Below, one piece after another: positions 32,891 to 53,300 of a stretch of 64,000 bases of DNA (its first letter is position 1; each line of letters opens with the position of its first letter). The stretch is from Salpingoeca rosetta (Eukaryota > Protista > Choanoflagellata): contig JAWQFM010000022.1 in assembly GCA_033442325.1 (NCBI GenBank), positions 124,001 through 188,000 on the forward strand, given 5' to 3'. Made by a program: the position numbers and the translations under genes. The notes under the pieces are model-generated. The model did not search any database. It was not told where the DNA came from and saw nothing but the letters and a program-made list of their open reading frames with translations.

Positions 32891-34457
32891 TTATTTGGCC
32901 TTTGTTTGGTTCTTGACGGCCTCAATCTTCTTCTTGAGCTCGTCCGGGTTGAGGAGGTAGCTGCGACGGAGACAAAGAGGGGAAGGGCAGAAGGGATTGT
33001 TGTGTGAGGTTGGGGGGAGGGAGCCGTTGATGGCGCGGGTGACGGGATGCAATTTGGGGTTGGTGGTGGCCGACGGGGGGGGGGAGGAGTCAACACAGAC
33101 TGCGAGAGAAGCAAGGAAGACACACACACACACACACACACGCACACACACACACACACACACACAATAGCAAATACCAGCACAACAAGAACAAGAACAA
33201 GAAAAGCAACGACGCACGACGCACGACGACGATGACGCACCTGCCGGAGAGGTGCTCGGCTGCGTTCTCGCGCTTGATGGGCTTCATGTCCTCATCAAAC
33301 TCGTACACGAGCGGCACGCCCGTGGGTACGTCAATCTTGGTGATGACGTCCTCGGGGATGTTGTCGAGATGCTTGATGATGGCGCGGATGCTGTTGCCGT
33401 GGGCCGCGATGAGCACGCGCTTGCCGCTCTTCACCATCGGCACAATCGTCTCGTTCCAGTACGGCAGAACACGCTCAAGCGTCAGCTTCAGGCTCTGTGG
33501 CGCAGAGAACGAGGACGAGGAGGAGTGTGTGGATGAGGGAAGAGGGAGAGTGAGTGTGTGTGTGTGTGTATGTGTGTACTTGTGCGTGTGTACTTGTGTG
33601 TGTGTGTGTACATTTGTGTGTGTACATTTGTGTGTTGTGTGCGTGCGTGCGTTGATGTACAACATTGTGTGATGGCCCTGCATGCTTGTTGTGCGCTGCT
33701 CCCACACCCTGCTACTTCGCGCGCGCATGGTTGCATGGATGCATGGATGCGTGCCCGCACCTCCGTGAGCGGGAGCTTGTCCTTGGGGATGTCCTTGGCC
33801 CAGGGGAAGTTGCCCGGATAGTACTCGTGGTCCTCCGTGGCCGGGGGTGGAGGCACATCGTACGAGCGGCGCCAGATCATCACCTGTTGTTTGTTTGGTG
33901 TGTGTGTATGGGGGGGGGGGCAGACCAATATGTTGGTTGTTCGGGTGAGGCAGATTGAGGGTGCGATGGTGTTCATCCTTTCACAAGTGCACACGCAAAT
34001 GAATAAACAAACAAACCAACACAAACACACACACACACACAAGCAAACAAACCAACACACACACACACACACACACACCACACACACACCACACACACAC
34101 ACACACACACGCACGCAGCTGCACCTGGTCGATGCCGTGCTTGTCGACGGTCTCCTGCTTGTTGAGGCCGGCGAGGGCGCCGTACATGCGCTCGTTGAGG
34201 CGGTAGTCCTTCTCCACGGGGATGTAGAGCTGGTCAAGCTCCTCCAGGACAATGTTGCATGTCTGGATGGCGCGCTTGAGCACAGAGGTGTAGGCAATGT
34301 CAAACTCGTACTTGTGCTCCTTGAGCATCTTGCCTGCCTCCTGGGCCTCCGACACGCCCTGCTCCGAGAGCGGCACGTCGACCCAGCCCGTGAACTTGTT
34401 CTCCAAGTTCCACACGGACTGCCCGTGCCTCACAAACACAACAGTGTACTTGGACAT
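32891..34457 (-). CDS. PGAM: 2,3-bisphosphoglycerate-dependent phosphoglycerate mutase, 4 exons
   Basis: Motifs [48 protein letters not shown] and [10 protein letters not shown]...[12 protein letters not shown]. The last exon is [22 protein letters not shown]. An upstream in-frame ATG at 34553 is possible. Confidence 0.95.
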
Positions 34458-34925
34458 TCTCCTTGCTGCCTGCGTCGCCACGGTTGCTGCTGGTGGGTCC
34501 TTGGCTCTGATGCTCGTGCTCTTCTCGCTGCTGCAACAGCTGCTGCTGAACATATGAAGAGGTGTTGGGAATGGGTGCAGTCGGTGGCAAGAAGTAGATC
34601 AGTGTGTGCGTTGGTCGGTTGCTGAGATTGCTGCTGCAGCAGAAAGTGTGGCGTTGGGTGAATGCATTTTGTGGTGTCGCATAGCACATATAGCGCCGGG
34701 CGGCGTCCGCTGAGTCATCATTCCTCTCTTTCTTCCTCCACGTCACAGCACATCGAGAGAGTGTGCTGTGCTCCTCACATTCACTTGCTTGTTGTGTCGA
34801 CATTCATTTCCTTCCCCCTTCATCTCCGCTCTCATCAGTCTTGATCTCTTTGTAACATCTGGTGAGAGAAAGCAGAGCAAGGCAAGGCAAAGGCAAAGCA
34901 AGGCCAAGGCGACCCTCCTGTCGTC

Positions 34926-35490
34926 ATGTTCCAGGCGTTGTTTGGATCGTCTGGCGGCAGCGGCGATGGGCGAGCTGTCCTGGTGAACGGGGACTGCCTC
35001 ACCCTCCGCGCGGGCACGCGCAGGTTCACGCCGCGCATCAAGAACACGTCGGCACAGCCGTGGAGTGGCACCATCCGCCTCGTCTCCGTCAATGGGTTCC
35101 CCGTCAGGGGTGAGGACGACGGCGGCAAGAAAAACACGTGGCAGATCCCCGTCACCATGCCTGGCGAAACAAGCACCATCGAGATCCTCGTAAGTGAGTG
35201 TGTGTGTGTGTGCGTGTGTGCGTGTGTGCGTGTGTGTGCGTGTGCGACTGTGTGTGAGTATGTGAGTGTGTGAGTATGTGTGTGAGTATGTGAGTGTGCG
35301 AGATGGAGTGCCACCATGAAAGCAAGTCAAAGGAAGCGAGTGGCGTGCGAATGGGCAAGTCGCGCTGTGTTGTGCTGATGCAAAGCACACTGCAAGATCA
35401 GTGTCGATGTGCCTGTTTTTTTTTTTTTTTGTTTTTTTTTTTTTGACATTTTGCTCACCGTGCTTTGCCTGCCGCCGGTTGTGCTTCCAC

Positions 35491-35540
<50 letters not shown>

Positions 35541-35810
35541 CGTACGCACGCATGGTCGCTGTGGTTTCAGTTGGATCCCATGTTCGGCACTGTGAAGCTG
35601 CAGTTTGAAGTCGAGGACGCAGATGGCCAGCCACTCGGCAACTTCCAGGGAACACCAGGTGCCACGCAACTGCCACTTGCTTTGAGCGTGCACGTCATTC
35701 AATCATGTTTTAGGGTTTCAACATGTGCGCATTGTAACGTTACACGCACACAGACACAGACACAGACACACAGACACAGACACAGACACACACACACACA
35801 CACTCACACA

Positions 35811-35847
<37 letters not shown>

Positions 35848-37075
35848 ACACACGACTCTGGCCTTGTTTTTGTTTTCACCTCTGATCTACATTCCAGGGC
35901 AAATGATGGTTCGCATGGAAGGGCACAAGATGAGAGCAATGGTAAGTGAATGCGTGAGCTCTTTCTGTCTTTGGTCGTGCGGGTGACGAAACACCATCCC
36001 TTTCACGTACGCTTTGCTCATCCAAGACATCATAACACACACACACACACACACCCGCATATGCAGGCCCTCATGTTGCACAAGATCAATGGGCGTGACG
36101 TGTTCGACACCAACCAGCCATCGCCTGACCTCAAGGAACAGCTCCAAGCCACAGGTGTGCATATGTTTATGTGTGTGCGCTTGCACTTGCGCTGTGTGTC
36201 GAGAGTAGTCTGCGCAGCTTATTTCTGCTACCCTCACAACACACTCTCACAACAACACATTTCCAACAACACCCCCACGGGCAGAGACCAAGGTGCGGGT
36301 AACCCCGGCGCTGGTGCGGGCGATGCTACAGCGCGAGAGCGAGCTGCGCAAGACAGATGCCGTGCAGCGCGAGTACACGGTCGACGGTGTCATCCCCGTC
36401 ACGCAGCGGCTGCAGCGGCGCGTTGCGGAGGAGTTTGGGTTCAGCGACCCCGCGGTCGGGGTTGAGCTGATGCAGGCGGCAGAGGCCCTGTATCCGGACG
36501 AGGACATGAGGAGCGCGTCGCACTGGCGCAAGTACAACCGCGCGTCACGTGGCGTTGTGTCACCTGGCGATGACGTCACTGCCACGCCCCTTTTGACAAT
36601 GGACGGGGCATCCACCACGCTCGGCGATGCTGTGCACGATGACAGCAAACCGTGCGTTGTGATGTGCGGGTCGTATTCGTGACCGCCGTTCCGCCTGCTG
36701 GTGGAGGACCTTCTTCAGATGACGGAGGACTTTGCCGGCAAGGCGGAATTCATGTCCGTTTACCTGTGCGAAGCGCACGCGCAGGACGAGTGGCCTGTGG
36801 GGGACAGGTTCATCAACGTTCCCGTGTTTGACCAGCACAAGACGGTGGAGGAGCGCGCCACCGCCGCTGGAAAGTTTGTGCACGACTACGGCTGGCACAT
36901 CCCGATGTACCTGGACACGCTGGACAACGCGGTGGTGACGGCGTTTGGTGCGTGGCCTCTTCGCTTCTTCATTGTGCAGGGCGGCAAGCTTGTGCACAAG
37001 GCGGAACCCACGCACGAGTACACGTACAGCGTGCAGGATCTCAGGGATGCGCTCACCTCCCTACTCTCACCATAA
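34926..37075 (+). CDS. Iodothyronine deiodinase-like selenoprotein (424 aa, in-frame TGA read as Sec at 36680-36682) with an uncharacterised N-terminal region
   Basis: Exons 34926-35189, 35571-35658, 35898-35941, 36067-36154 and 36285-37075 are GT-AG and phase-compatible (1275 nt). ORFs 36293..36682 and 36701..37075 share one frame: CVVMCGSYS-TGA-PPFRLL, followed by VYLCEAHAQDEW and YLDTLDN...FGAWPLRFFIV, which are deiodinase motifs. Confidence 0.85.
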
Positions 37076-37430
37076 CCACCCATGCTGCTGTTGTGTGTGT
37101 GTGGGTGTGCTGGGTGTGTTTGTTTGTTTGGTGTGTTTGTTTGTGTGTGTGCGTTCAGTGTGCGTGTGTGTGGGTGTGCTGGGTGTGTGTTCAGTGTGTG
37201 TGTGTGTGTGTTTGCTGCGTGCACATGTGTGTTTGGTGTGCTGCAACGCGTGTTCTGCATTCTGTGTCCCATCATCTTTGTGGTCTATCCCGCGACTCCC
37301 CTCACCATTATCCCTTTGAGCTCTGTTGTCCCGCGTTACCTACTGCATGTCGCTGCGCGCGCGTGTGCTTTGTTCTTGTTGGTTGTTTGTGATGGGCGCC
37401 TGGTCATCCTCTCTTGTTGAGGCCCAGGAA

Positions 37431-37557
37431 GGTGGAACACACGTGTGTGTGATGCATGTGTGATGTGTGGTGCATGTGTGTGATGGTGGTTCAACAAGAC
37501 CACCACCACCACCGCCAACATCAACATCAATGATCATGTCACGACGTGTGTTCCACC
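37431..37557 (+). promoter_or_regulatory. Long 3'-UTR hairpin downstream of the selenoprotein gene (candidate SECIS region, non-canonical)
   Basis: A perfect 14-bp inverted repeat ggtggaacacacgt (37431-37444) / acgtgtgttccacc (37544-37557) encloses an inner stem-loop ggtggtt-caacaa-gaccacc. A canonical SECIS core could not be confirmed by eye. Confidence 0.3.
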
Positions 37558-37751
37558 ACTGCCCTGATGTGTGGTTCTCCCTGCTGCTGCTTCAACCCCC
37601 CCCCCCAATGTGAAGCACAGCTGTGGTGGCCACACCATACCGTCCAAGTCCACAGCCGCCACGCTCAGGAGTAAAAAGAAACACCACGCATTTCATATTG
37701 TTCCTTCCTCCTGCCATATATTATTGCGTCATGTCATCCCAAAGCAACAAC

Positions 37752-37943
37752 ATGAAAGCGTTGTTGGTGTTGGCGTTAGTGGTGTTGGTGTTGGCAGGGA
37801 TGGTGGTGAACGGGGTGAGCGCAGGTCGTGGTGGTGGGTTCGATGCAGTGTTGCAGCAGCTGACGGGAGGCATTCAAGGCAACGGCAAGGAAGCAAGAAG
37901 CAGTGATGATCGTGAGCTCACCATCGCATCCACCATTGAGGTT

Positions 37944-38023
<80 letters not shown>

Positions 38024-38609
38024 GTGTGTGTGTGTGTGTTGAGTAGCGGGAGGCAACTGCACTGTGTCTCGCTGCGCGAGAGGCAACTGCACTGCATGAG
38101 AAGCAACTGCATTGTGTGTCGCTGCGCGAGAGGCAACTGCACTGTGTCTTGTTGCATGAAAAGCAACTGCATTGTGATGTGTGTTGCTGCTAGCCAAGTC
38201 ACAACATGTCTTGTGAATTGCGTTGTGACAGGAGCTGCGCCAGTTAATGGCCTCAACGACAGGGGACGATGCGTTGCAGCGAGCCGTGCAGCGGCACGTG
38301 CATGCCTTTGACGCATACGTGAACGGAAGGGACCCTCCTCGCACCGCGGAAGACTTTTCAAGCTCGCTCCACTTCCAACATGTGCCGCACATGGATGAAC
38401 TCGCCACTCAAGCGCGGCTGCGGTGGGCTGTTGCGGCGGAAGAAACACCCAGGACACATGACATTCACGGCGTCCCCCTGCTCGTGGACCAACCTCGTCT
38501 GCTTCAAGGCGCCATCACACCCACCAGCCATCACTTTTGGGTGAGCGGCTTGTTGTTGTGTGGGAGCCATCAGGGTCACACACACACACACACACACAGT
38601 CACACACAG

Positions 38610-38698
<89 letters not shown>

Positions 38699-39819
38699 CT
38701 CACTCACACACACACTCACACACACACACACAGAGTCACTCTGTCACTCTCTCTCACACAGTCACTCGCACAGTCACTCACACACACTCACACACACACA
38801 GTCACTCACTCACTCACTCACTCACAAGCACACGCCCTTCCTCCCCTGCAGCACGCTGTTCGTGCATTGGAAGAAGGAGACTTTTCTCAGAACACACTGA
38901 ACAGCGTGAGAAGTGACCTTGGCTTGCTTGCAAAGGCTGCTGTTGCCGCTGCGACACCCCGTCTCAACCTCCATCTGCTCAGTGCGCAGGTCTGTGTTCG
39001 CAACGGGTCGCGCTTTGTGTCACCCTTTCAGACGGCCGCAAGCATTGGGCTCGACTGCACCGACATCCACAGCGCTCCAGCACTGTCAGCGCCGCTTGAT
39101 GCGGCATGTGATGCGAACGAACCCAGCTGTGTCCAGCATTCGTCCCAACAGCCCATCGCTGATGACACAGAGGGGCGGTTGGAGGTGTGGCTGCCCTTGG
39201 CGGCTTCGCGACTGGACATCACCAGCAACATCATTCATCTTCGGGACCCGCGACCAGCGAGCGGCCTTGCGTTTCCACCATCGTTCCAGCTCGGCAACAC
39301 GCGTGCGCTGGAGATGCAGCCTGGCACCGTGCACATCGTGCCCAGCAGCCTCGCTGGCTACATGCTTCACAAACACGGCCCTGTTAGTGGTGATGGTGGT
39401 GGTGGTGGAAGTGACGGTGACTTTGGTGGGAGCCAAGATGACAGCGGTGGTGATGATGATGGAGATCCACCCAACATCATTCTTGTGGCCCATGCCGTCA
39501 AAGGTGGCTGTGCTGGGGGCTGTGCTGAAGCGGGTGATTTGAGTACTTGCGGCGACGGGTGTGGTGGCGGTGGCAACGACGACACGCTGACGGTCGAACT
39601 GCACTCTGCGTGGGCCGGTGTGAATGGTCGCGGCCACTTCAATGCGCCGCACAACCACCCGGACGCCACGCTCTCCGGCGTCGTCTACTTGCGGTGGGAG
39701 CCAATAGCTATGATGGTGCTTGGTGATTGGTGACAAGTGATTCGTAGTGTTCATTCATCATCGCAATGCGCCATTCAGTACCGTGCACATCGGTGTTTGT
39801 TTGGTTGAAGCAACAAACA

Positions 39820-39859
<40 letters not shown>

Positions 39860-40657
39860 CACGCGGCCTCTCACGTCTCCCCTTGCAATGTTGGTCCCCA
39901 AACAGAACGGGTCATGCTTCGCCAGCGGCCACAACGCGCATCACGTTCATCAAACCGAACTGTCACTCCAGCAACAGCTCTCGGTCCGTGTTAATGTTCG
40001 CTTGCAGTCATCGCGACACTTTCACATTTCAATGCTTGTTGTGCTCCGCACTCGCACTCGCACTCGCACTCGCACTCGCACTCGCACTCGCACTCGCACG
40101 TACCCTCCAAATGCCCTGACACACATACGACGACATGGTTGATTACGTTTCCGCATCAGGTGTCACGTGAGCGCTGACGTTGAAGCGGGGGATGTGCTCG
40201 TGTTTCCATCGTGGCTGGATCATTTTGTTCCCCCACACACGGTGAGAGCGCTTGGCATGCGTGGTGTGCTCTGCGTATTGGGGGGGGGGGGAGGGGAGCG
40301 ATTGCACTGCGAAACCACACACTCACTCACTCACACACGCTCACACACACGCTCACACACACACACTCACTCACTCACACACACGCGCGCTCACTCACTC
40401 ACTCACTCACTCACTCACTCACTCACTCACTCACTCACTCACTCACTCACTCACTCACTCACTCACTCACTCACACACACTCACTCACTCACACTCACTC
40501 ACTCACACATTGACAGGGCGCGGAGCCACGCATGATGGTTGCCTTCAACGCTCGCGTGCGATACACATATGCGAATGGCGGAGAAGGTGCAGCCATGGCA
40601 GGAAACAGAGATGCAAGCGTGCACCTCCCACGTCGACACATGCACGCACACAACTGA
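37752..40657 (+). CDS. Secreted 2OG-Fe(II) oxygenase-like protein (TIGR02466/2OG-FeII_Oxy_5 type), multi-exon
   Basis: Signal peptide MKALLVLALVVLVLAG. Motifs SAWAGVNGRGHFNAPHNHPDATLSGVVYL, EAGDVLVFPSWLDHFVPPH and EPRMMVAFN. Stop TGA at 40655-40657. Confidence 0.75.
38050..38175. repeat. Degenerate intronic minisatellite built on gcaactgca (5 copies)
   Basis: Units such as gaggcaactgcactg... and aagcaactgcattg... repeat inside intron 1 of the 2OG oxygenase gene. Confidence 0.75.
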
Positions 40658-40911
40658 TGCTTTCGTGCAACGTCGCTCGTCTCATAGCTCGCATGTGTGC
40701 GTGTGCGTGTGCGTGTGCATGTGTGTTGAATTATATTGGCGCATGACACACTTATGGGCATATGTTTATTGCTTTTGAGACACGGTGAAAAAGATGTGTA
40801 ACAGAGAGATAAACCACTGCAAGCTATAGACAACAATGACATCCGTGATCACGTAACGCGGGGTGCATGTGCAGTGGATGCACTCTTGTGTGCGCTTGTG
40901 TACTCCTGCCA

Positions 40912-42007
40912 TCACGCGCTGGCTTGTTGTTGTTGGCCATCTGTTGCTGCCGGCGTGACGCGCAATGCACGATCTTGTTCCTGCTGCCCCTCGTCAATGG
41001 CTTCCGTCCCTGTTTCGCGCTCGTCGTTGTGATCGCCCGTCAGCGCAGGTCTGTCATCCCCCTCCTCGCTGACACCACCATGATCACCATCACCAACTGT
41101 TGCGCCCATCCCCTCTTCTTCGCCAACAGCTGCTGGTGTGTCGAGAGGTGATCCATGACCGCCGCTGTCACCGTCACCTTCATCTACAGGTTCCTTCTGC
41201 ACCCCATCGCTTTGGCTGTTGTGTTTTTCGCTCTCACGCTCCAACGCTGCCGCCGTCGCTGCTGCAAACGCGTTTCATGAGACGGTGGGGGTGGGGGAGG
41301 GTCAAGGCAGGGCAAGTGTTAGACAAAACAAGAGCACGAACTGTGGTCATGCAGGGTGTGGGGGGGGCAAGAGCCCATGTGTCCTGAGGAACAACAAAGC
41401 AGGAGCAAGTTGGCATTAATGCTCACCTTCCCAAGCATCGGGCTCAGTCTCCCGCAAGTGTCTCTGCAACGATCTACCAGCAGGAGAAGAGAAAGAAGGG
41501 TGTAAGTGGCGCAAGCACAGGACCAGCCACAGAACCAGCAGTAAAAGATCTGCAGTAAAGGACCAGCAGTAAAAGATCTGCAGTAAAGGACCAGCAGCAA
41601 CAAAGGACCAGCCACAGGACAAGCTGCAGTGGCAGCTGTGGGCGCAAGCGAACACACCAAGCACCAGCCGGTGTCACCACCCATCGTCCATGTTCTAAGA
41701 ACAAGACCAAGACCGAGAAAACAAAGGGGGGATAGTGAAAGCGCACCTTAGGGTACGGAAGATGATCATGAGGTCGTCCTTGGCTGCGCTGATGAGATGT
41801 GCGTAGCGAGCATACTGGTGTTGGACAGCGATGTGCTTGCGGTCTGCCTCCTGTGTTTGTGCCACCAATGTCTGTGTCGTCTGCTGCAGTCTCGCCAATC
41901 TACGCAGCCAAACATGTACATGAGTGTGCATAAGGAGGAGTGAGGGTGTGGGTGTGTCAGAGAGAGAGAGAAAGGGGGAAGTGCAGGTTGAGCTCGCAGA
42001 CGAGTGT

Positions 42008-42077
<70 letters not shown>

Positions 42078-42298
42078 TGCAAACGAGGCACGCACGTTTC
42101 CTGCTGCTTTGGGAGCACATGTTGTTGCAACTGCTCGTTATCCACCATGCCGTGCAAGGCATCTATCAGCGTTGTGCGATTGTCACCATCATCATCATCA
42201 TCAACACCGCCAGTGGCAGCCTGAGCACTGCGACTGCTGCTGCTTGTCGGCCTGTCGTCCGCCATCGTCGTCGTTGTTGTGTGTGCTTGACCTTCCAT
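40912..42298 (-). CDS. KXD1: KxDL-domain protein (BORC/BLOC-1-associated KXD1 homolog), multi-exon
   Basis: LIDALHGMVD...KQQET|LARLQQTTQTL...HLISAAKDDLMIIFRTLR|SLQRHLRETEPDAW matches the KXD1 KxDLxxIFxxLR pattern. Acidic tail. Confidence 0.72.
41534..41589. repeat. 28-bp tandem duplication in a KXD1 intron
   Basis: accagcagtaaaagatctgcagtaaagg occurs twice in tandem. Confidence 0.85.
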
Positions 42299-42643
42299 CG
42301 AAAATTATGCCAAGTTGTCCACAAATCGCCAACAACCACAGCTCTGTGGAACCCTTCCACCCACCTCCATCGCGCGTGCTGTTGTGCTGCCACGAAAGCA
42401 ATCCAAGCGTTTACTTCTGAGTTGATGGTTGCATTGGCACCACCACCCAGAGACTGCCACATACAGACCATGCCCATCACCACCACCACCACCACCACCA
42501 CCATCGTAGCATAATCATGCACGTCATCATCATCAAATCGCACCACACTGCGGTGACACCACCGCGACATGCAAGCACAACCGCAGCTATGGACCTTGAT
42601 ATCTTCAACTCAACTCAAAACAACACAACAAGCCGGTAGCCAT

Positions 42644-42706
<63 letters not shown>

Positions 42707-42957
42707 CTCAGCCAGTCGGCCATCCATTCCCATTTCTCTCCCCATCACGCTCACACTCACACTGTTGCACTCACTCACGCTCACGCACACACACACACAC
42801 TCCCTGACTCACATTCCCACCCTCACTTGCGCCACGCGCTACCTTGCTTCGGGCTGATACATACACACCGCAACAAGAAACGACTGCACGACACCAAACC
42901 TATGCACAAAACGACCACAGCCCATCAACCACATGTCCACATGAACCACAGCACATG

Positions 42958-44133
42958 TCACTTCTTGCGGGTTGGCTGGATGGCAAGGGACCGGAGCATA
43001 TCCGTGGTTGATGGGCGTTTCGACCGGCGTGGATCCGTTGGCGGCCGCTGCGGTGGCATGCGCTCGTTCTGCGCATCAGCCTGCTTTGCATCGTCAAACC
43101 CTTGGATCGCTGCACATGCATGAAGCGTGGCAACAAGTGTACACGCGTGTGCAATTTGTGAGCGATCAAGATCGGTCCGCTAGTCACACGATGTGGCATA
43201 TAGTGTGGCACACGTTGTCCATGCAGCCCTTCTCTTGCACGCCTTGCAGGGTAGCAACAGCAGCAGCAGCTACAGGAACGGCGGCAGCAACAACAGCCGC
43301 AACAACAGCAGCATTACCTTGTTCGACGCCGAGCGGGCCGGCAGAGAGGACGCCCTTGGGCAGGCTGCCGCTTGGGCTCATGCCGCGAAGAATGTCCACG
43401 CTCTCAGACGCTTGCCTGCAAGACACAACGGGGTAACACATGACGCGTGAGTCGTGGCGGTGGGCGTAGTGGTGTGAGGTAAACCGCAACCAGGCGATAC
43501 ACACATGGTGGGGGGGGGCGCGGGAGGCGAATGGAGGCAATGACGAACGAGCGACAACAGACGAACAACACACACACACACATAACCACGCACACACACG
43601 TGCCAATTGCCTCCCTCCCAGTCATCGCGGTTGAGCAAGCAATGGACCTCGATTGAGAAGTAACCGCGGTGGTGGAAAACATGCGGGAGACCTTCCCGAC
43701 GGCCCTGATCTTGTTGCGGATCTTCTCTCGTCGCTTCTCAACATCGTCCTTGTCGCCCATCCCCACACACTGCACACAACACAACACAGCCACACATGAG
43801 CGCGGGCATCACAGCAAGAGACGAGGAAGGAGCAGGGCGTGGACACACACATGAATGCATGTTCACACATACACACACACAACACCAAAACACGGCACGA
43901 CACACACACACACACACACACCCACACTACACACACACACTACACACACACACACACAATGCACACAGACACACAGACACACACAAACACACACATTCGG
44001 CACACCTGTGACGGGGGCCGGGACCTCGAGCAACGTCGGCTCCTCCTTCAAGACTTTTCCCGCCGTAATCAGGATCTGAATGGCGGCCTCCTCCGTCACC
44101 ACACCTGCCCCCAACAGTAGCACCCATCAACGT

Positions 44134-44205
<72 letters not shown>

Positions 44206-44828
44206 CAAGGGAGGAAGGCACACACGAGAAAGCGTAGGGCACGGCGTTGCCCATTAACACGGCAGGTGGGGCCAACTTGTGCCAGTAAATGCATGTGAGG
44301 GCATTCCAACGCAATACACGCGCGCAAGACGCCTCGAAGGGTGCTTTGCGGGGACAAATCACCTTCTTTCCGGAAGTGTTCCCTGAGGACGTCGATGCGT
44401 GGCTTGCCCTTGGCGTCCAGGATCGCATCCACACCAAGCACCTCTGCTGCTGGCGGCTCAACTCCTGTGGATACGAGACAGAGAGTACATCGTGTGAGAA
44501 CAAGATTCTGCCGCGCGCACATGTTGTCCAATGCCCGTGCAAGCTTCAACACATGTACACATATGCAAACGCGTGTCCGTGCACACAAGCACACACATAG
44601 ACACATAACGACACATGACACACACACACACAAACCCACACACACACAAACCCACACACACACACACACACACACACATCACGACACACACACACACATC
44701 ACGACACACACACACACACACACACATACACACACACACACATCACGACACATACCTGCTGGACGGCGGTGCCGCTTTGGCTTGGCAACGGTCGATGACC
44801 TCTTCTTTGTCGATGCGGTGCTGCTCAT
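42958..44828 (-). pseudogene. Calcineurin A (PPP3C)-like gene lacking the phosphatase core (internal deletion with frameshift, or mis-assembly)
   Basis: Exons 44828-44756, 44464-44363 and 44104-44006 splice to KPRIDVLREHFRKEG...EEPTLLEVPAPVT|VCGD (ends 43759). Immediately after, in another frame, comes RREKIRNKIRAVGKVSRMFS, then QASESVDILRGMSPSGSLPKGVLSAG and AIQGFDDAKQADAQNERMPP. GDIHG, GDYVDRG and GNHE are not present. Confidence 0.7.
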
Positions 44829-45948
44829 GGTGTGTGATCTGTGTTGCGTTGGGGCGCGGGTGGGTGGCACGTCGTCGAGGACGAAGCACGGAGTGGAGGT
44901 GCTTCAAGTCGCAAACTCTTCGCTGCCACAGTATCTGGCCGCTGGTGGGCAGTTTCCTCCTGTGGCACGTTCTGTCGCAAACGCACGCGTGCGCCAGGGA
45001 AACAAGGAAGCACGACGGCGCAAACAGGGCAGGAGGCGAGGGTGGAGGTGAAAATGAGCTCAAGCATGAACGAAAAGACGAGGCAGAAAGGGAAGAACGG
45101 GAAGAAAGGAAGAGCACCCACTCCACATGCGCGCGCGCGTGTGCGTAATCGATGGGAGTGTGTGCGCGGGTGTGTTGTGGAATGATGCTGGTGCTGATGG
45201 TGGTCGTCTCCTTGCGTACGCGACTCTCGCTTGCTGGCTCACGGCACGCGTACCTCATCATTCCTCTCTCCACAACCACACCCACATAGGCACGTCTCTC
45301 CTCCGTTCCAGTTCTGCTGTTCTTCCTCACTCGACCGCTCGCTCGCTCGCTCGCTCGCCTGCTGGTCGGTCGCCCTCGCAACCAACCAGGTGAAGATCGA
45401 TCTTTCAAGAAGGGACTGACAACCCCTTTGCTTGTTGCTGCTGCGACGAAATAAACACACACGCACACGCGCACAAGCACGCACAACACCCGTCAACGCA
45501 AGCAAACGCAACAGACAACACGTCAGGCCAGACCGAACCAAATGCCCCCCAACTCCGCCTTCGCTTCTTCCCCTGAACGCGTGAATGCGATTGGGTGCTG
45601 TGCGCGTGGTGGTCAGGTTGTGTGTGCTTGTCTCGTCTGTCTATCTCCTCGCTATCACAACCCATCGCACAACCCTCAACCGTCCATCACCAACCCACCA
45701 AAAACCCACCTTCGCTTCGTTCGCTTTCCGCCTTTGTTGCCTTCGCTGCTGCCTGACGGGAAATATAGTGTGGAAATCTGCCCGAATTTTATGCGGATGA
45801 CGTGACCGATGACAACAGCAGCGATGAGCGTGATGAAGATGGATTGCGTTTGGCGTGTTTCGTGCCGGCTCGTGTTGGCCTGTGCCCCTCTTTGTTGCTT
45901 GTTGCTTGTGTCTTGGCTTGGCTTGGCTGCTTGGTTAGTTTGGCTGCT

Positions 45949-46116
45949 TCACTGCCGCGCTGGTGGTGGTGCAAGGCAGTGCCGGAGGCGGCAGCATAGT
46001 TTGTCCTTGTTTTTCTGATGATCGCGTGGTGTGTGCATGCGTGAGTGTGTTAGTATGTGAGTATGTGTGTGTGAGTGTGTGTGCGTGTGTGAGTATGTGT
46101 GTGTGTGTGTGAGTTT

Positions 46117-46147
<31 letters not shown>

Positions 46148-46647
46148 GGTGGAGATGGATGGTTCTGTGGCAAAGACCCCCAACACATGCAAGGCAGCCC
46201 CACCGCACCTGAAAGAAAGTGAGCATCTGGCGCAAGGAGCCAAACACTCGGCCGTGTTCGTTCACGAAGGCCAAGTCCTTGTTGAGGGAAAACTGGTTTG
46301 GAACAAGCACCACGCGAGGAAAGTGAGTATACAGCTGGTGAGGAAGGGCAATAATGTAGTGACACAGAAAGAGAAACAATGCAACCAACCAAACTTCAAC
46401 CACACACACACACACACACACACACATCCACACACACACACAACCACGCACGCACACACACACACACATCGGAGCCAAACACATGCACACACCTCGTAGT
46501 GGCGCGTTGAGCCCTGGTAGAGGACAGATACAACAATGGTGTACCGCTTCTTCAGGCTGCTCCGCAACAAATATGTTCCTGTAAGGACAGCGTATTCGCA
46601 TGCGAACGAAGCGTACGTGTATGTGTGTGTGTGTGTGTGAGATGTGT

Positions 46648-46698
<51 letters not shown>

Positions 46699-47028
46699 AG
46701 TGTGTGTGCGAGTTGTGTGCTTGTTCCCACCTTTTACACACGTGTTACACACACACACACACACACGCACACGCACACACATGTTTTCGCTGACTCTGCC
46801 ACGCACCGTCGGTGTCTAGCGAAGCGTTGTGTTGGTGAAAGTATCCTTTGAGAAGGGCAGAGGCCATGCGGCGGGTCGTGCAGTGGTGCACGAAACGAGC
46901 AAACGACGCATCGCTCACGTGCAACACAAGTGGACCTGGCACACGCGCACACATGTTGCGTGCTGTGTGAGCATGATCGAGAAGACCAAACCACCAAGCG
47001 ACAGACCAAAGGCACAGCCCACCGAGCT

Positions 47029-47062
<34 letters not shown>

Positions 47063-48759
47063 AAACAGACACAGGCACACACGCAGACACACAGAGACAA
47101 ACACACACAGAGACACAGGCACAGACACACACGGACACAGGCACAAACACAGACACAACACACACACACACACAGACGCATGCACACACCACAGGTAACT
47201 GCGCCACGCTTGAGCCATGCGTCCTCCTCCGCGGCCGTGAGGGGCCCGCGGGTGTCCCTCTTCGACACGCCAGAGGGTCCATATGCAGGCGGTTGTAACA
47301 CCGCTGCCGACGACGATGCAGACAACGGCGATGATGGCGGAGACGCAACGGCCACGCTGGCAAAGGGCGTGGTTGGAACAACAGGCAGCGGCCGCAGCCC
47401 AGCAGCCTCGCGCTGGGGAAGGTCGGGGTGCACAAGGCGATCGAGGTGTGCTGGCTGCCCGTGATTGGGATGGCTGGCATGTGGCGTGGGAGATGAGGGC
47501 AGGTGGCGAGGCTGTGATGACAGCGACGAGGATGATGCGGAGGAGGGGAGCGGCATGGGCTCGCGCGGTTTCCGCTGGTGCGGGTGTGTTGATGACGGAG
47601 AGGGGTTCACAGCGTTCGGTGGATCAACAACACCAGCAGGTGGCGGTTGTGTGCTCACTGGTTCGGCTGCGTCGCGGGGTGGCAGCGCTGGTACACCTGG
47701 TGTTGTGACATCCGTGACAGCTGTGACAGCGGCTTGGCTGCCTGTGTGGTCGGCCGCAGGCTTGCCTTGAGCAGCAGGCGACGGCGATGGCACCGGTGGC
47801 CGTGGTGGCGCGTCTTCGTGCTTCTTCGGTGGCAGTGGAGGGCACGTGATTGTCCAGTCACATCGGGTTGCCGCTGCACGTGATGGCACGGCTGGCTTTG
47901 GCGCAGCAGTTCGTCTTGCGTTGCTGTTGCTGCTACTGGCGTGGCTGTTGTTGGCCTTGTTGATGCCGTTGTTATTGATGATGCTCACGCTGCCGATGCT
48001 GTGGCTGGACACCTGCTGTTCGTTGATGGCGGCATAGAGATGCTGGCTGCCGTCATCGGCGGTCGCGTCGGTGGTCGTGCCAGGCGCTGGTTTCTGCTCA
48101 TGCACGGCATAGTACAGGTGCTGTTCGCTGTTCTCGGATGCCATGCGGTCGAGGCTGGTGTCTGCTGTGGGCGACCAGTTCATGGAGGCCGGTGGGGTCG
48201 CAGCCACGTTGGTGGTGGACCCCGCCGGCTTCGTCAGGGCCGCGTGTGCGGTTGCGGGCGTGGGTGGGTGTTCAGGGACTGCTTCATCCAGCCGATCGTA
48301 GTTGTGTGTGGGTTCGTCACGCACGTGGTGTGGTGGCAAGTGATCGTAGCCGGACGTGGACCTCCTCTGCACTGCTTTCCCCTGGTGTGGTTTCTGTTGT
48401 GGTTGCTGCTGTTCTTGTTGTTGGTGTGGTTGTTGGTGTGATTGTTGTTGTTGTGGGTGTCGTTGCTGCTGTTGTTGGGCTGCCTGTCTTTGATTGTATT
48501 CGCGCGTGAGATCCTCGATGGTCAGGGTGCTCATGTGAGACAGGACAGCCTTGACCGCTTGTGCATCCTCGTACTTCTTCTCAAGCTTTTCATAGTCCTC
48601 GGGCGTCAGCCATGCGTCATAGATATGGTCCGAAAAGTCATCACGCACCTGCACCACCGGAGGCGGAGAAGCGCTCCTTGGCTGGCCCTGCTCGTTTGAC
48701 TCTCCATTCAACAACGCCATGCTTTTCCCTCCCCTCTCACGGCTCAACACATCACTCAT
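45949..48759 (-). CDS. Tyrosine-motif/proline-rich adaptor with a C-terminal SH2 domain, multi-exon
   Basis: The large first exon has Tyr motifs (IYDAW, DYEKL, GYDHL, NYDRL, LYYAV, LYAAI) and PxxP motifs (PPLPPKK, PPRPPVP, PALPPR). SH2 elements: AWLKRGAVT, ASALLKG, GTYLLRSS...VVSVLYQGSTRHYE and FGSLRQMLTFFQ|KNKDKLCCRLRHC. Confidence 0.75.
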
Positions 48760-48947
48760 GATCAACAGGATCAACGGGTGTTGTGTGTGTTTGGCGTGAG
48801 TTGTTGTGTGCGTGTGTGCTGATGTGTTGTTGTGCCCCTCGCTCGCCCGCCCGCAAAATCGTCATCCAAAAACATTGAAGCGACACCAAAAACAGTAGTA
48901 GCACACATCAAAACGAAAGCGGAACGGCGGCCAGCAGCCAACCACCA

Positions 48948-50336
48948 ATGCCACCCATCCGACGACAACCGTGAGTGCTGCCTGCTGTTGACACTGCCTG
49001 CTGTTGATGCTGCCTGCGTGCAATGCCATGCATGATCCCCCACCTAATCTTGATTCCACACCTCATCGTTGCCTGCTAGGTATGAGGTCCTCTTGGATGG
49101 TGAGGTAGAGGAGACCGCAAAGGCTGCAAAAGCATGCTCCGGTGCGTTCATGTGTGTGTGAATGTGTGTGAATGTGTGTGTGTGTGTGTTTGTATGTGTG
49201 TGTGAGCACCAGTGTCCATCTCTCTCTCTCTCACTTGCTGTGTCACACACACACACACACACTCACACACGCACACATACGCACTCGCACTCACTCACAC
49301 ACACGCACACTCACATACACACTCTCTCCCTCCTTCCATCCGCTACCCCCCTCATGCCTCTCTCATGTCTTTCTGTTCATCGCCAACCACCACCAATGAC
49401 AGCGGATCGGTTGCTGAGCAACAATGGCGTGCTGAAGGTGACGACGCGGTGGCTGCGGTTCTTTGCCACCGTGTTTACGTGGCCCAGCACGTCGCAGGAC
49501 TGCCGTCCCGATACACAAGAAGAGGTGGCAGTGCATCCGCTCTACCGGCGGGAGCTCTCAGCCGTGTATGAGCTGTGCCACCTCGTGCCCGTGGTCCACA
49601 TTGACGGCAAGGGCGACGAAGACGAGCCGCCCACCACCATGGACATCTCCCTCTTTCAGTCCGTAAGGGTGCTTCGCCTGTGCCACGTTGAGCTGCGGCT
49701 CGTGCACGGTCTCCACGCTGTCAAAGACCAGCTGCAGCAGCTCGTGCTGTATCGGTGCGTGGACCCCATCGACGCCGTGCTCGTCTCCTTTGGCGCAGAC
49801 CGCCTGCCCTTTGCCACCGTCACCCCGGCCAGCGTGCTTGCAACGCCAGCCAAGCAAGCCGGCACCGCCGATGCTGCAGGCGCCGAGACACCAAACACGG
49901 CGCTTCGTGACAGCTCGGCAGTACAAGGCAGCGTGGCGCGCAGTCGCGATACGGCCATTACCCCTCCCGATGGCCTGGCTGATGGCGGTGATGGTGGCGG
50001 GTTTGGCGCAGACGAGGTGTGGCCGGCGCTGCACATCTTGGACGCGGCCTGCAACGAGCTGCACGAGATCTCGCGGTCCATTGCGCGCGCGCCCAACGTG
50101 CACACGCTTGTGCTCAGCAGCAACAAGATTGCTGCGCTGGCCATTGAGCTGGCGCGGCTGCAGAGTCTGCACACCCTCTCCCTCGGGTACAACCACATCA
50201 CCTCCGTTGCTGTCGTCCGTGACATTGCGGCACAACACGGTATGCAAGCAGCACTGTTTGTATGTGAACTTGGCGTGATCAGCACGCATGCTGGGGTGCT
50301 CCTTTTGATGCATGTTTGTGGTGTGTGCGTGTGTGT

Positions 50337-50387
<51 letters not shown>

Positions 50388-53300
50388 CGTGTGTGCCATG
50401 GCATGCACTCTCTCCGTGTTCACATAACGCAACTTCTTCCTCCATGGTTTTATCAGGGCTGCAGAAGCTGACCCACCTCACCCTCTGCTTCAACCAGATC
50501 AAGTCCTTGGACGGCCTTCAGTTCCTCTCGTACGCGTGTTTGTATACTTGTATGCTTGTGGGTGTCTGTTGATGTGTGTGCTTGTGTGCTAGTGTGCTTG
50601 TGTGTATGCACTTGCGCCGGTGTACACGCGTGTGTATGCGTCAGCGTGTGTACGCAGCACCATGTCTCTGCCCGACCTGTTCTCACGCGCGTCGTCGCTC
50701 TCTGCAAACGCACACGCTGCCAGTAACTTGACCGTGCTGAATGTTGCCCACAACCGCATTTCGGATCTTCGCGAGATTGACGCGTTCCTGGTGCCCCTGC
50801 CCTTCCTCCGCGAATTGGACCTTCGGGGAAACACCGTCGTGATGCAATCCGATGTGCACCCGCTCATCTTCGCTCTCTTTGGCCGCGACAGATGGCGCTC
50901 CTTTGTTCTCAACGACATCACCGCCAGGGTGCGACTGATGCTTGTGTGTGTGTGTGTGAGTGTTTTGTGTGTGTGTGTGTGTGTGTTGTATGTACACTTG
51001 TTTAAACAGTGTTCAAACACCGTTGCTTTGTGTGCCACTCCTGACCGTTGACTGATGCCCTCAACCCCCCCCCCCCATCCCCCAATTGCACCGCACGCAC
51101 AGGACCTGACGAATGTGCAACTTGTGCACTACTTCCTGAAGGAATTCGAAAATCCGCACGGTGAGTGCTGGCATCGTCCATGCGTGCTTGACCGTCTACG
51201 TGCGTGTGCGTACATGTCCTTCAAGCTGCCAACTGTGTCACTAACCCACCCACCCACTGACACTATCATACACACACACATACACACAGTGCGTGCGTCT
51301 GTGTTGGCTCCTCGGCACGGCGCGCTTGATACGGGCGCAAAGAACACGGCGGCACACCTGCAGGCACTTGACCCGACACGCGTGCAGGACGTGGATGTGC
51401 TGCGCGTGGCGCAATCAGAACGCACACCGGTGCAGGAGGACCTTCAAGGCGTAGAGGGACAGGCGTCGCCGCACACCGCAAAGCTCAAGGCGAAGAAGAC
51501 CAAAACCAAGTCGAAGAAGAAGAAAAAGAAGAAAAAGAAGAAGGCAGCTGCAGCAACAGCTGTCGTGGTCGGCGATGAGGCAGTCGAAGCCAACAACAAC
51601 AACGACGCCAACATCATTGGTGGTGGTGGTGGTGATGTTGACGGTAGAGAGAGGGAGCGAGCTGGGCAATCACAGCCTGGCAATGGCAATAATCAGCGGT
51701 AAGAGGACGTTGCGCTTGATGGGCACACATGTGCGCATACATCAATGTTGTGTCGTCAGTACTTGCGCCTGCTTCGCCGCTGCCGTTATGCCTCATGTCA
51801 CCCTCACAACTGCGTGTGCATGTGTATGTGTGTACATATATACGTGTATGTGTGTACATGTGTGTGTGTGTGTGTGTGTGTGTCCGTCAGTGGCGATGCG
51901 ACGGCGTTCTACGCGAATCTGCAGGAGATGGAGGACGCGCCGCTGGTGCTGCGGATGAAGAGCGAGGAGGCTGCCAACGAAACGCAACCACAGCACGTGC
52001 ATGATGGTGATGGTGGTGGTGGTGATGGACAACAACAACAACAACAACAACAACAACACGAGCGCCCTGGACGTCAATCAGAGGCGTCTCTGCCACATGA
52101 ATTTCCACCACATCTGCAGCATGAACAGCAGGATGCAGCAAGCCCCCGACTTGCTCGAATGTCGGCTGTACGTGCAAGCATGGACGACGACAACAGCGCA
52201 CACACTCGACAGGATGGCTTCTCATCCCCTGCAACGGCCACTACGCATGCTGCTCACCACTCCCCCACCGCCATCACCACCACCGCCGCCACCGCTTTGC
52301 CTGCACACGACCTGCACGGTCGCTCCACTGTACTGCTGTCACCTCCAAAGGCGAGACATCAAAGTCATGACGAAGGCGCAGCTGTGCCTGCACCAGCAGT
52401 GCATTCGAGAGCCCATGAACTCACGCACAGCGAGCAACAACCACAGCAACACCAGCAACACCAACAACACGTGTATCATCATCAGCCACAACAGCACCGC
52501 AGTGATGGTGGTGATGGCGATCAAGACATTCCACGCGCTCGTGGGGCGCGTGTGAAGAAGAAACTGTTTGCGACGATGGACAGTGGTGATGGCAGTCACG
52601 CTGATCTTGGCATCAGGCGGGTTGCTGATGCTGGTGTTGACGTTGATGGCGACGTTGGTGGTGGTGGTGGTGCCGATGCTGACATTAATGATGGTGATGG
52701 TGGTGGTGGTGGTGGGTTTGGAGATGAGCGCGATGACGACTTTGTGTTCCCTGGGCAGACATTGCTCTTCAGCCCAGGCCGCAGGCAGCAGCAGCAGCAG
52801 CACACTTCATCACGCGGTCCAAGCCCAGGGAAGCGACCATCAGCTGTGGCAACAGCAGCAACAACAACAGCAGCAGCAACGGAAACATCCACAGCAGCAT
52901 CCACAGCGGCATCAACAGCAGCGAGTGCAGTAGAAAGCCCCAACAAGAACCCCAAGTCGCCGCAGCGCGGTGACTCAAGCGCCAGTGATACTCACGTGCC
53001 CACCACAGCTGCTGTTGATGACAGCGATGTGATTGACAGCAACGCGACAGACCTGCTTGACCTCGTTGAACAGAATGCGCAGTTGTTCTCGGTACCCGGC
53101 CACCACCACAGCTTCACTCGGCGGTGCGTGCACAACACATGTCCGACCGGTGATGGCGATGGCGATGATGATGACCACGATGTGCTGGGTGGGTTTTATC
53201 TCGTCAATCTTATTCTCACCTCTGGACGACGTGAGCCCGTTGATGTGGAGGTGAGAACATGCGTGCTCTCCCTGCTCACGCTGGTGATGGCGTGTCGCCA

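Follow-up and report, generated by a model that had tools for sequence, protein, structure and literature searches.

The window, a 64-kb stretch of DNA, carries on its plus strand a five-exon gene whose reading frame crosses a single in-frame TGA. The original prediction had joined two ORFs, 36293..36682 and 36701..37075, by reading through the TGA at 36680-36682, and had spliced four upstream exons onto them. Both parts of this reading were confirmed. The two ORFs lie in one frame on either side of the TGA (TGC GGG TCG TAT TCG TGA CCG CCG TTC CGC CTG CTG), every intron has GT..AG borders, and the 293 codons before the TGA, the TGA itself, and the 130 codons after it, which end at a TAA stop, make up 424 codons in one frame. 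The motifs quoted for the protein, CGSYS-stop-PPFRLL, VYLCEAHAQDEW, LDTLDN, and AWPLRFFIV, are all found. The features of the gene are as follows.

34926..35189, plus strand: exon 1 (aa 1-88), with the start codon and most of an orphan β-rich domain; an ATG-initiated ORF with a GTAAGT donor
35571..35658, plus strand: exon 2, 88 nt, AG/GT borders, frame kept
35898..35941, plus strand: exon 3, 44 nt, AG/GT borders, frame kept
36067..36154, plus strand: exon 4, 88 nt, AG/GT borders, also backed by k-mer shares and by tblastn homology over the exon 4/5 junction
36285..37075, plus strand: exon 5, with the helical module, a β-hairpin, the selenocysteine (Sec) codon, the rest of the deiodinase fold, and the TAA
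36305..36490, plus strand: conserved helical module (aa 169-230), modeled with AF2 and conserved in the relatives L012, L013, L014, and L016
36524..37054, plus strand: match to T4_deiodinase (PF00837), profile positions 62-233, 76.2 bits, with one TGA inside
36680..36682, plus strand: TGA, predicted Sec294 in G-S-Y-S-U-P-P-F from its profile position, the Dio alignment, and the TGA in relatives
37076..37700, plus strand: 3′ UTR, end approximate, from the word shares of sequencing runs X13 and X14; the next ATG is at about 37732

The upstream neighbor, at 33981-34553 on the minus strand, is a divergent ORF that resembles phosphoglycerate mutase (RHGQS...WN motif), and the gap of about 370 nt between it and the selenoprotein ATG is probably a shared promoter region. 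Downstream, a plus-strand gene at 37732-38550 has a signal-peptide-like start and a long (GT)n intron. No more than about 30-100 nt separate the 5′ end of this gene from the place where the selenoprotein mRNA is presumed to end.

Transcription, N-terminal domains, and the gene model

Transcription was gauged indirectly, from the k-mer shares of sequencing runs, with 31-mers sampled across the TGA. For 36285-37700, runs X13 and X14 contain word shares of 0.99 and 0.91, against only 0.09 for 35942-36284, a stretch made up of intron 3, exon 4, and intron 4 in which about 9% would be expected if exon 4 alone were present. Because the words of introns 3 and 4 are nearly absent and those of exon 5 are present, these two runs behave as spliced RNA. 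Runs X2-X4 contain 1.00 of the words of both stretches. The runs of study P5 gave a like pattern, the two stretches there coming from different runs (X16 and X38, from one sample). Polyadenylation between the two ORFs had been named as a refuting condition, and the RNA-like runs contain the whole stretch through to about 37700. The mRNA appears to lack introns 3 and 4 but to retain the TGA together with a long 3′ UTR. An unedited UGA had been set as a check, and all sampled 31-mers across it were found in 20 runs from 6 studies, the RNA-like runs included. The codon there is TGA rather than TGC, TGT, or TGG, and no intron spans it.

The sequence ahead of the catalytic fold had been described as β-rich and then helical, which AF2 models of both parts bear out. 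The exon-1 domain is predicted to be all β (pLDDT 72). It has no match in Pfam, and its best feature score in the ESM Atlas is 0.80; against the PDB, Foldseek returned generic Ig-like sandwiches only, at E >= 0.1 and none of them significant. An exhaustive search recovered only two true relatives of exon 1, both N-terminal fragments (P0010 at 42% identity and P0012 at 33%), and these orthologs begin at the same Met. Its other matches, one to a repeat in a polycystin-like protein and a weak one to the PPC domain, are regarded as spurious.

The helical module contains five helices (residues 7-21, 24-33, 35-49, 55-63, and 65-68 of the modeled piece, the last of only four residues), with pLDDT values of about 85-95 from a 5-sequence alignment. 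A β-hairpin follows in the model and leads into the deiodinase fold. Conservation in L012, L013, L014, and L016 extends over residues 163-293. A structure search of the PDB gave no match to the module, and the nearest clusters in the ESM Atlas, at a TM of 0.52, are eukaryotic proteins labeled as fragments. These clusters of the long form come from rotifers and other eukaryotes, and they may be other members truncated at the UGA. L014, a distant relative from a marine metatranscriptome (3-731), has an N-terminal SAM domain (PF07647, 36.8 bits), and from the sequences at hand this is a selenoprotein family that swaps its N-terminal domains. The protein had further been proposed to be soluble, with no N-terminal transmembrane anchor. 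Consistent with this, the best 19-residue Kyte-Doolittle mean is 1.23 and lies within the catalytic domain, and the N-terminus of the predicted protein is rich in Gly and Ser.

The exon 4/5 junction is crossed by a tblastn alignment to L013, and the predicted placement of exons 1-3 rests on splice signals, frame, and the exon-1 orthologs. A gene model that is partly wrong, with the selenoprotein starting in exon 4 or 5 and exons 1-3 belonging to another transcript or being non-coding, is unlikely. Such a model would draw on the basis of exons 1-3 in GT-AG signals and frame, on the short contigs of the exon-1 relatives (L020 and L021), which end before any deiodinase part, and on the different N-termini of distant relatives, for example the SAM domain of L014. 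However, one stop-free frame runs through four consecutive introns, exon 1 has conserved orthologs with a shared starting Met, the upstream neighbor is on the opposite strand and leaves a normal promoter gap, and exons 4-5 offer no alternative in-frame start that is backed by homology.

The deiodinase-like domain and its TGA-bearing relatives

The piece that follows the TGA aligns to the Pfam T4_deiodinase profile in its own right, with 63.4 bits over positions 115-233 (the PF00837 cut-off is 27), so the joining of the two ORFs exceeds chance. With the TGA read through, the score climbs from 63 to 76 bits. When all six frames of the assembly (55.4 Mb, 68 contigs) were searched, exactly one PF00837 locus emerged, this one, and it is read through one TGA. 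In the relative L013, the pre-TGA piece ends at PF00837 position 113; since the post-TGA match starts at 115, the TGA corresponds to position 114 of the profile. The first residue after the TGA, that of PPF, was aligned by phmmer to residue 62 in Dio2 (9h48_A) and to residue 58 in Dio3 (4tr3_A); the solved structures are 9H48 for Dio2 and 4TR3/4TR4 for Dio3. In both proteins, the residues aligned with PPF come directly after the catalytic Sec. The proposal that the UGA is read as Sec within a deiodinase-family thioredoxin fold is thus supported by the profile position and the Dio alignment, and also by the TGA-bearing relatives described below.

In Dio2, the proton relay and the edges of loop D comprise Ser127, Thr129, Tyr157, Glu160, His162, Trp167, and His182 (PMC11592359). 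The phmmer alignment gives as their counterparts here Ser291, Ser293 (Thr to Ser), Tyr321, Glu324, His326, Trp331, and His346. Across an alignment of six relatives, E-A-H, W, and P are invariant. The residues of the thyronine site appear to be absent: in a single pairwise alignment (numbered as chain index + 113), Dio3 Phe258 and Arg275, the substrate-cleft and carboxylate-clamp positions, lie opposite Pro386 and Pro403. Because these two positions align to prolines, thyronine binding is doubtful, and nothing in the aligned residues points to thyronine as the substrate.

A word-index search for relatives returned short proteins only, of 75-143 aa. In their contigs, another ORF comes to an end just a few codons upstream of the called start, and the intervening stop is always TGA; the relatives are thus listed as short proteins because their ORFs are split at the TGA. 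The original prediction had raised the question of whether homologs would have Sec or Cys at this position. The same column is TGA in five independent relatives (L012, L013, L014/L015, L016, and L018/L019), which come from transcript and metagenome contigs. Their motif around the TGA is G/S-S-x-[S/T]-TGA-P-P, and their true stops are TAA or TAG. The nearest relative, L012, is about 60% identical upstream of the TGA and 63% identical downstream. The 3′ UTRs of L013, L014, and L016 contain a canonical type II SECIS, and a genomic contig from a close relative (L017), which does not reach the TGA, has a canonical SECIS 35 nt past the stop. Since the TGA is conserved and SECIS elements are present in the 3′ UTRs, these long-form relatives constitute a selenoprotein family, and the predicted Sec column of the window gene is the one shared by this family. 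All of the relatives recovered are split by gene callers into two ORFs at the TGA. The subfamily is under-counted because of these cuts, and the window gene is likely mis-annotated.

Sec machinery of the genome and the 3′ UTR

The presence of Sec machinery in the genome had been left to be confirmed, and a tRNA-Sec was found (67.1 bits, cut-off 47), with the anticodon UCA in a CUUCAAA loop. It was confirmed by Infernal and missed by ARAGORN. A selD/SPS locus of four exons was matched exon by exon at G000:C8:994425-996420, and about 1.3 kb downstream of SPS there is a clean canonical GUGA-type type II SECIS (L023 1452-1499, about C8:997751). In this genome, SPS is probably a selenoprotein too. 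An exon-by-exon search of the genome did not detect SepSecS, a result we treat as uninformative. A Sec-MsrA gene has an in-frame TGA and a GUGA-type SECIS. Two SECIS_1 matches of equal score lie 7.5 kb apart (G000:C1:2354181-2354240 and C1:2346662-2346721, minus strand), one of them downstream of the Sec-MsrA gene, and the pair suggests a tandem duplicate of that gene. There is also a GPx gene with an in-frame TGA, at G000:C17:394367-394829. Its 3′ UTR (L022, about 916-1106) has an AUGA and, after it, an 8-bp helix enclosing a multibranch region of about 150 nt. This region is reminiscent of the candidate SECIS of the window gene.

Canonical eukaryotic SECIS elements are kink-turn stem-loops of the form AUGA/GUGA ... 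AA ... GA, with 11-13 nt between the core and the unpaired AA. Rfam detected no canonical SECIS in 37076-39500 (E <= 10), nor in 34000-39500 or in the UTR alone. Rfam is insensitive here, because the two MsrA copies were all that a genome-wide SECIS_1 search recovered, and at 25 bits they scored under the cut-off. A purpose-written SECIS scanner recovered six controls (MsrA, SPS, and four elements from homologs) and found nothing canonical on the plus strand from 37050 to 52000. The missing canonical SECIS is nonetheless weak evidence, because the SECIS of GPx in the same genome was not resolved either. Folding of the UTR gave the following candidate.

37386..37571, plus strand: candidate non-canonical SECIS, from UTR folding, with flanks like those of the MsrA SECIS
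37432..37556, plus strand: 125-nt hairpin inside the candidate, -65.5 kcal/mol, z = -5.1, with 0 of 200 shuffles as stable

In the core of the candidate, GUGAU (37389-93) faces UGAU (37565-68), both unpaired in the folded UTR. The 5-bp closing helix, GGGCG/UGCCC (37394-98 / 37560-64), has a pair probability of 0.94 in the full UTR; when two shorter contexts were folded, the values were 0.97 and 0.27. The genome's own MsrA SECIS has exactly the same flanks, UUUGUGAUG and CUGAUGUG, and as a pair they are unique within the window, which was scanned with positions 35246-35302 of intron 1 masked. In a UTR of this size, some 0.1-0.2 cores with a 5-bp helix would be expected by chance. Between the core halves lies a three-way insert of 172 nt, consisting of a small hairpin, an unpaired AA, and the 125-nt hairpin. 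With these 172 nt in place the canonical core-to-AA spacing is unmet, and no unpaired AA lies 12-13 nt from the core. Taking these features together, we lean toward 37386-37571 as the SECIS of this gene.

The 125-nt hairpin is near-perfect, with TG-rich and CA/ACC-rich arms and an apical loop of CAACAA, and it gives weak matches to several miRNA-precursor models. It may have arisen as an inverted microsatellite or as a small inverted-repeat insertion. Other placements of a SECIS core were tried and rejected. The GUGA at 37480 is correctly spaced from an AA but lacks a 3′ GA, the pairing of GUGA at 37449/37460 with UGAU at 37531 is an ordinary Watson-Crick duplex within the long hairpin, and the UUGA at 37417 was also discarded.

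The lack of a canonical SECIS in this 3′ UTR, against clear ones in the relatives and in two genes of the same genome, is what would be expected of a decaying or truncated gene that has lost its functional SECIS, in which the TGA terminates translation at residue 293 and the following 130 codons are an intact relic. The interruption of the candidate by a large microsatellite-like hairpin would fit as well. Such decay seems quite improbable, however. The 130 codons are open, the residues of the catalytic network are all intact, and identity to the nearest relative stands at 63%. The locus is also the sole DI-like one of the genome and is apparently transcribed, and the candidate preserves a K-turn-like core, flanks identical to those of MsrA, and a closing helix that is predicted to be stable. 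That the TGA is instead bypassed without Sec, through an unrecognized intron, editing, a sequencing error, or near-cognate read-through as Cys or Trp, could appeal to the atypical SECIS and to a Sec insertion deduced from sequence, but it is extremely improbable given the TGA-spanning 31-mers of the 20 runs and 6 studies, intron-lacking RNA-like runs among them, and the intron-less homolog transcripts that bear the same TGA.

Proposed function and comparison with known systems

We consider the gene very likely to be a genuine DI-like one that encodes Sec, its product being a soluble protein of 424 residues. We infer its Sec insertion, SECIS, chemistry, and substrate along the following lines. 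The single expressed five-exon gene would give a soluble PF00837 "DI-like" selenoprotein in which the UGA at 36680-36682 is decoded as Sec294, with insertion most likely directed by the atypical GUGA-type 3′ UTR element at 37386-37571. In front of the catalytic fold would come the conserved helical module and also, for this lineage, the orphan β-rich domain. By analogy with Dio2 and Dio3, the selenolate would attack an electrophilic substrate atom, either a halogen or a peroxide oxygen, and the proton would be supplied by a network of Ser291, Ser293, Tyr321, Glu324, His326, and His346. The oxidized selenium would then be re-reduced by thiols.

A bolder reading, which we put forward tentatively and regard as somewhat doubtful, is that the element at 37386-37571 functions as a SECIS whose architecture is new (a kink-turn core of GUGA/UGAU, a 5-bp helix II, and a three-way junction with the 125-nt hairpin) and that the protein represents a "long-form" subfamily of soluble deiodinases, which share a conserved helical module of unsolved structure and which annotations routinely cut short at the UGA. 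If the new architecture is real, the 11-13-nt spacing between core and AA would not be obligatory in this lineage. If the atypical element works, it would give tools for SECIS prediction a useful test case as well.

The predicted protein resembles Dio1-3 in its thioredoxin/peroxiredoxin-like fold, with Sec in G-S-x-[T/S]-U-P-P-F, in its Y-x-x-E-A-H-x-x-D-x-W segment, and in a second His that follows a loop as long as the Dio insertion. Unlike Dio1-3, it does not have an N-terminal membrane anchor, and it carries about 290 residues before the Sec, comprising the β-rich domain and the helical module. It also has Ser rather than Thr at position -1 of the Sec, and identity is only about 30%.

The long-form relatives (L012, L013, L014, L016, and L018) share the Sec column, the C-terminal motifs, including AWPLRF, and the pre-Sec module (consensus RE-x-ELR ... 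EFGF-x-D ... YP ... KYNR), although the contig of L018 starts too late to include this module. They differ from the window protein in their N-termini, with a SAM domain in L014 and none in L013, and in having a canonical type II SECIS where the UTR is long enough.

To our knowledge, deiodinase-family selenoproteins are known outside vertebrates but their substrates are not. DI-like selenoproteins occur in protists, early-branching fungi, invertebrates, and bacteria. Those described in the excerpted accounts for Dictyostelium (PMC2375036) and for early-branching fungi (bioRxiv 10.1101/314781) are likewise non-vertebrate homologs with an active-site Sec, in hosts with no thyroid hormone known from those accounts. 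As far as the same descriptions go, the window protein is set apart from them by its long N-terminal extension and helical module. The SECIS of the Dictyostelium DI-like gene is unusual too, having in the excerpted account an "extremely long mini-stem" (PMC2375036), whereas the window candidate has a three-way junction. Our literature search found no report of a DI-like selenoprotein in choanoflagellates. If the host is a close unicellular relative of animals, an experimentally tractable soluble member of the family could help to show the role that the family had before thyroid-hormone signaling. The predicted protein and its gene are distinctive in solubility, in the N-terminal modules, and in the atypical element of the 3′ UTR.
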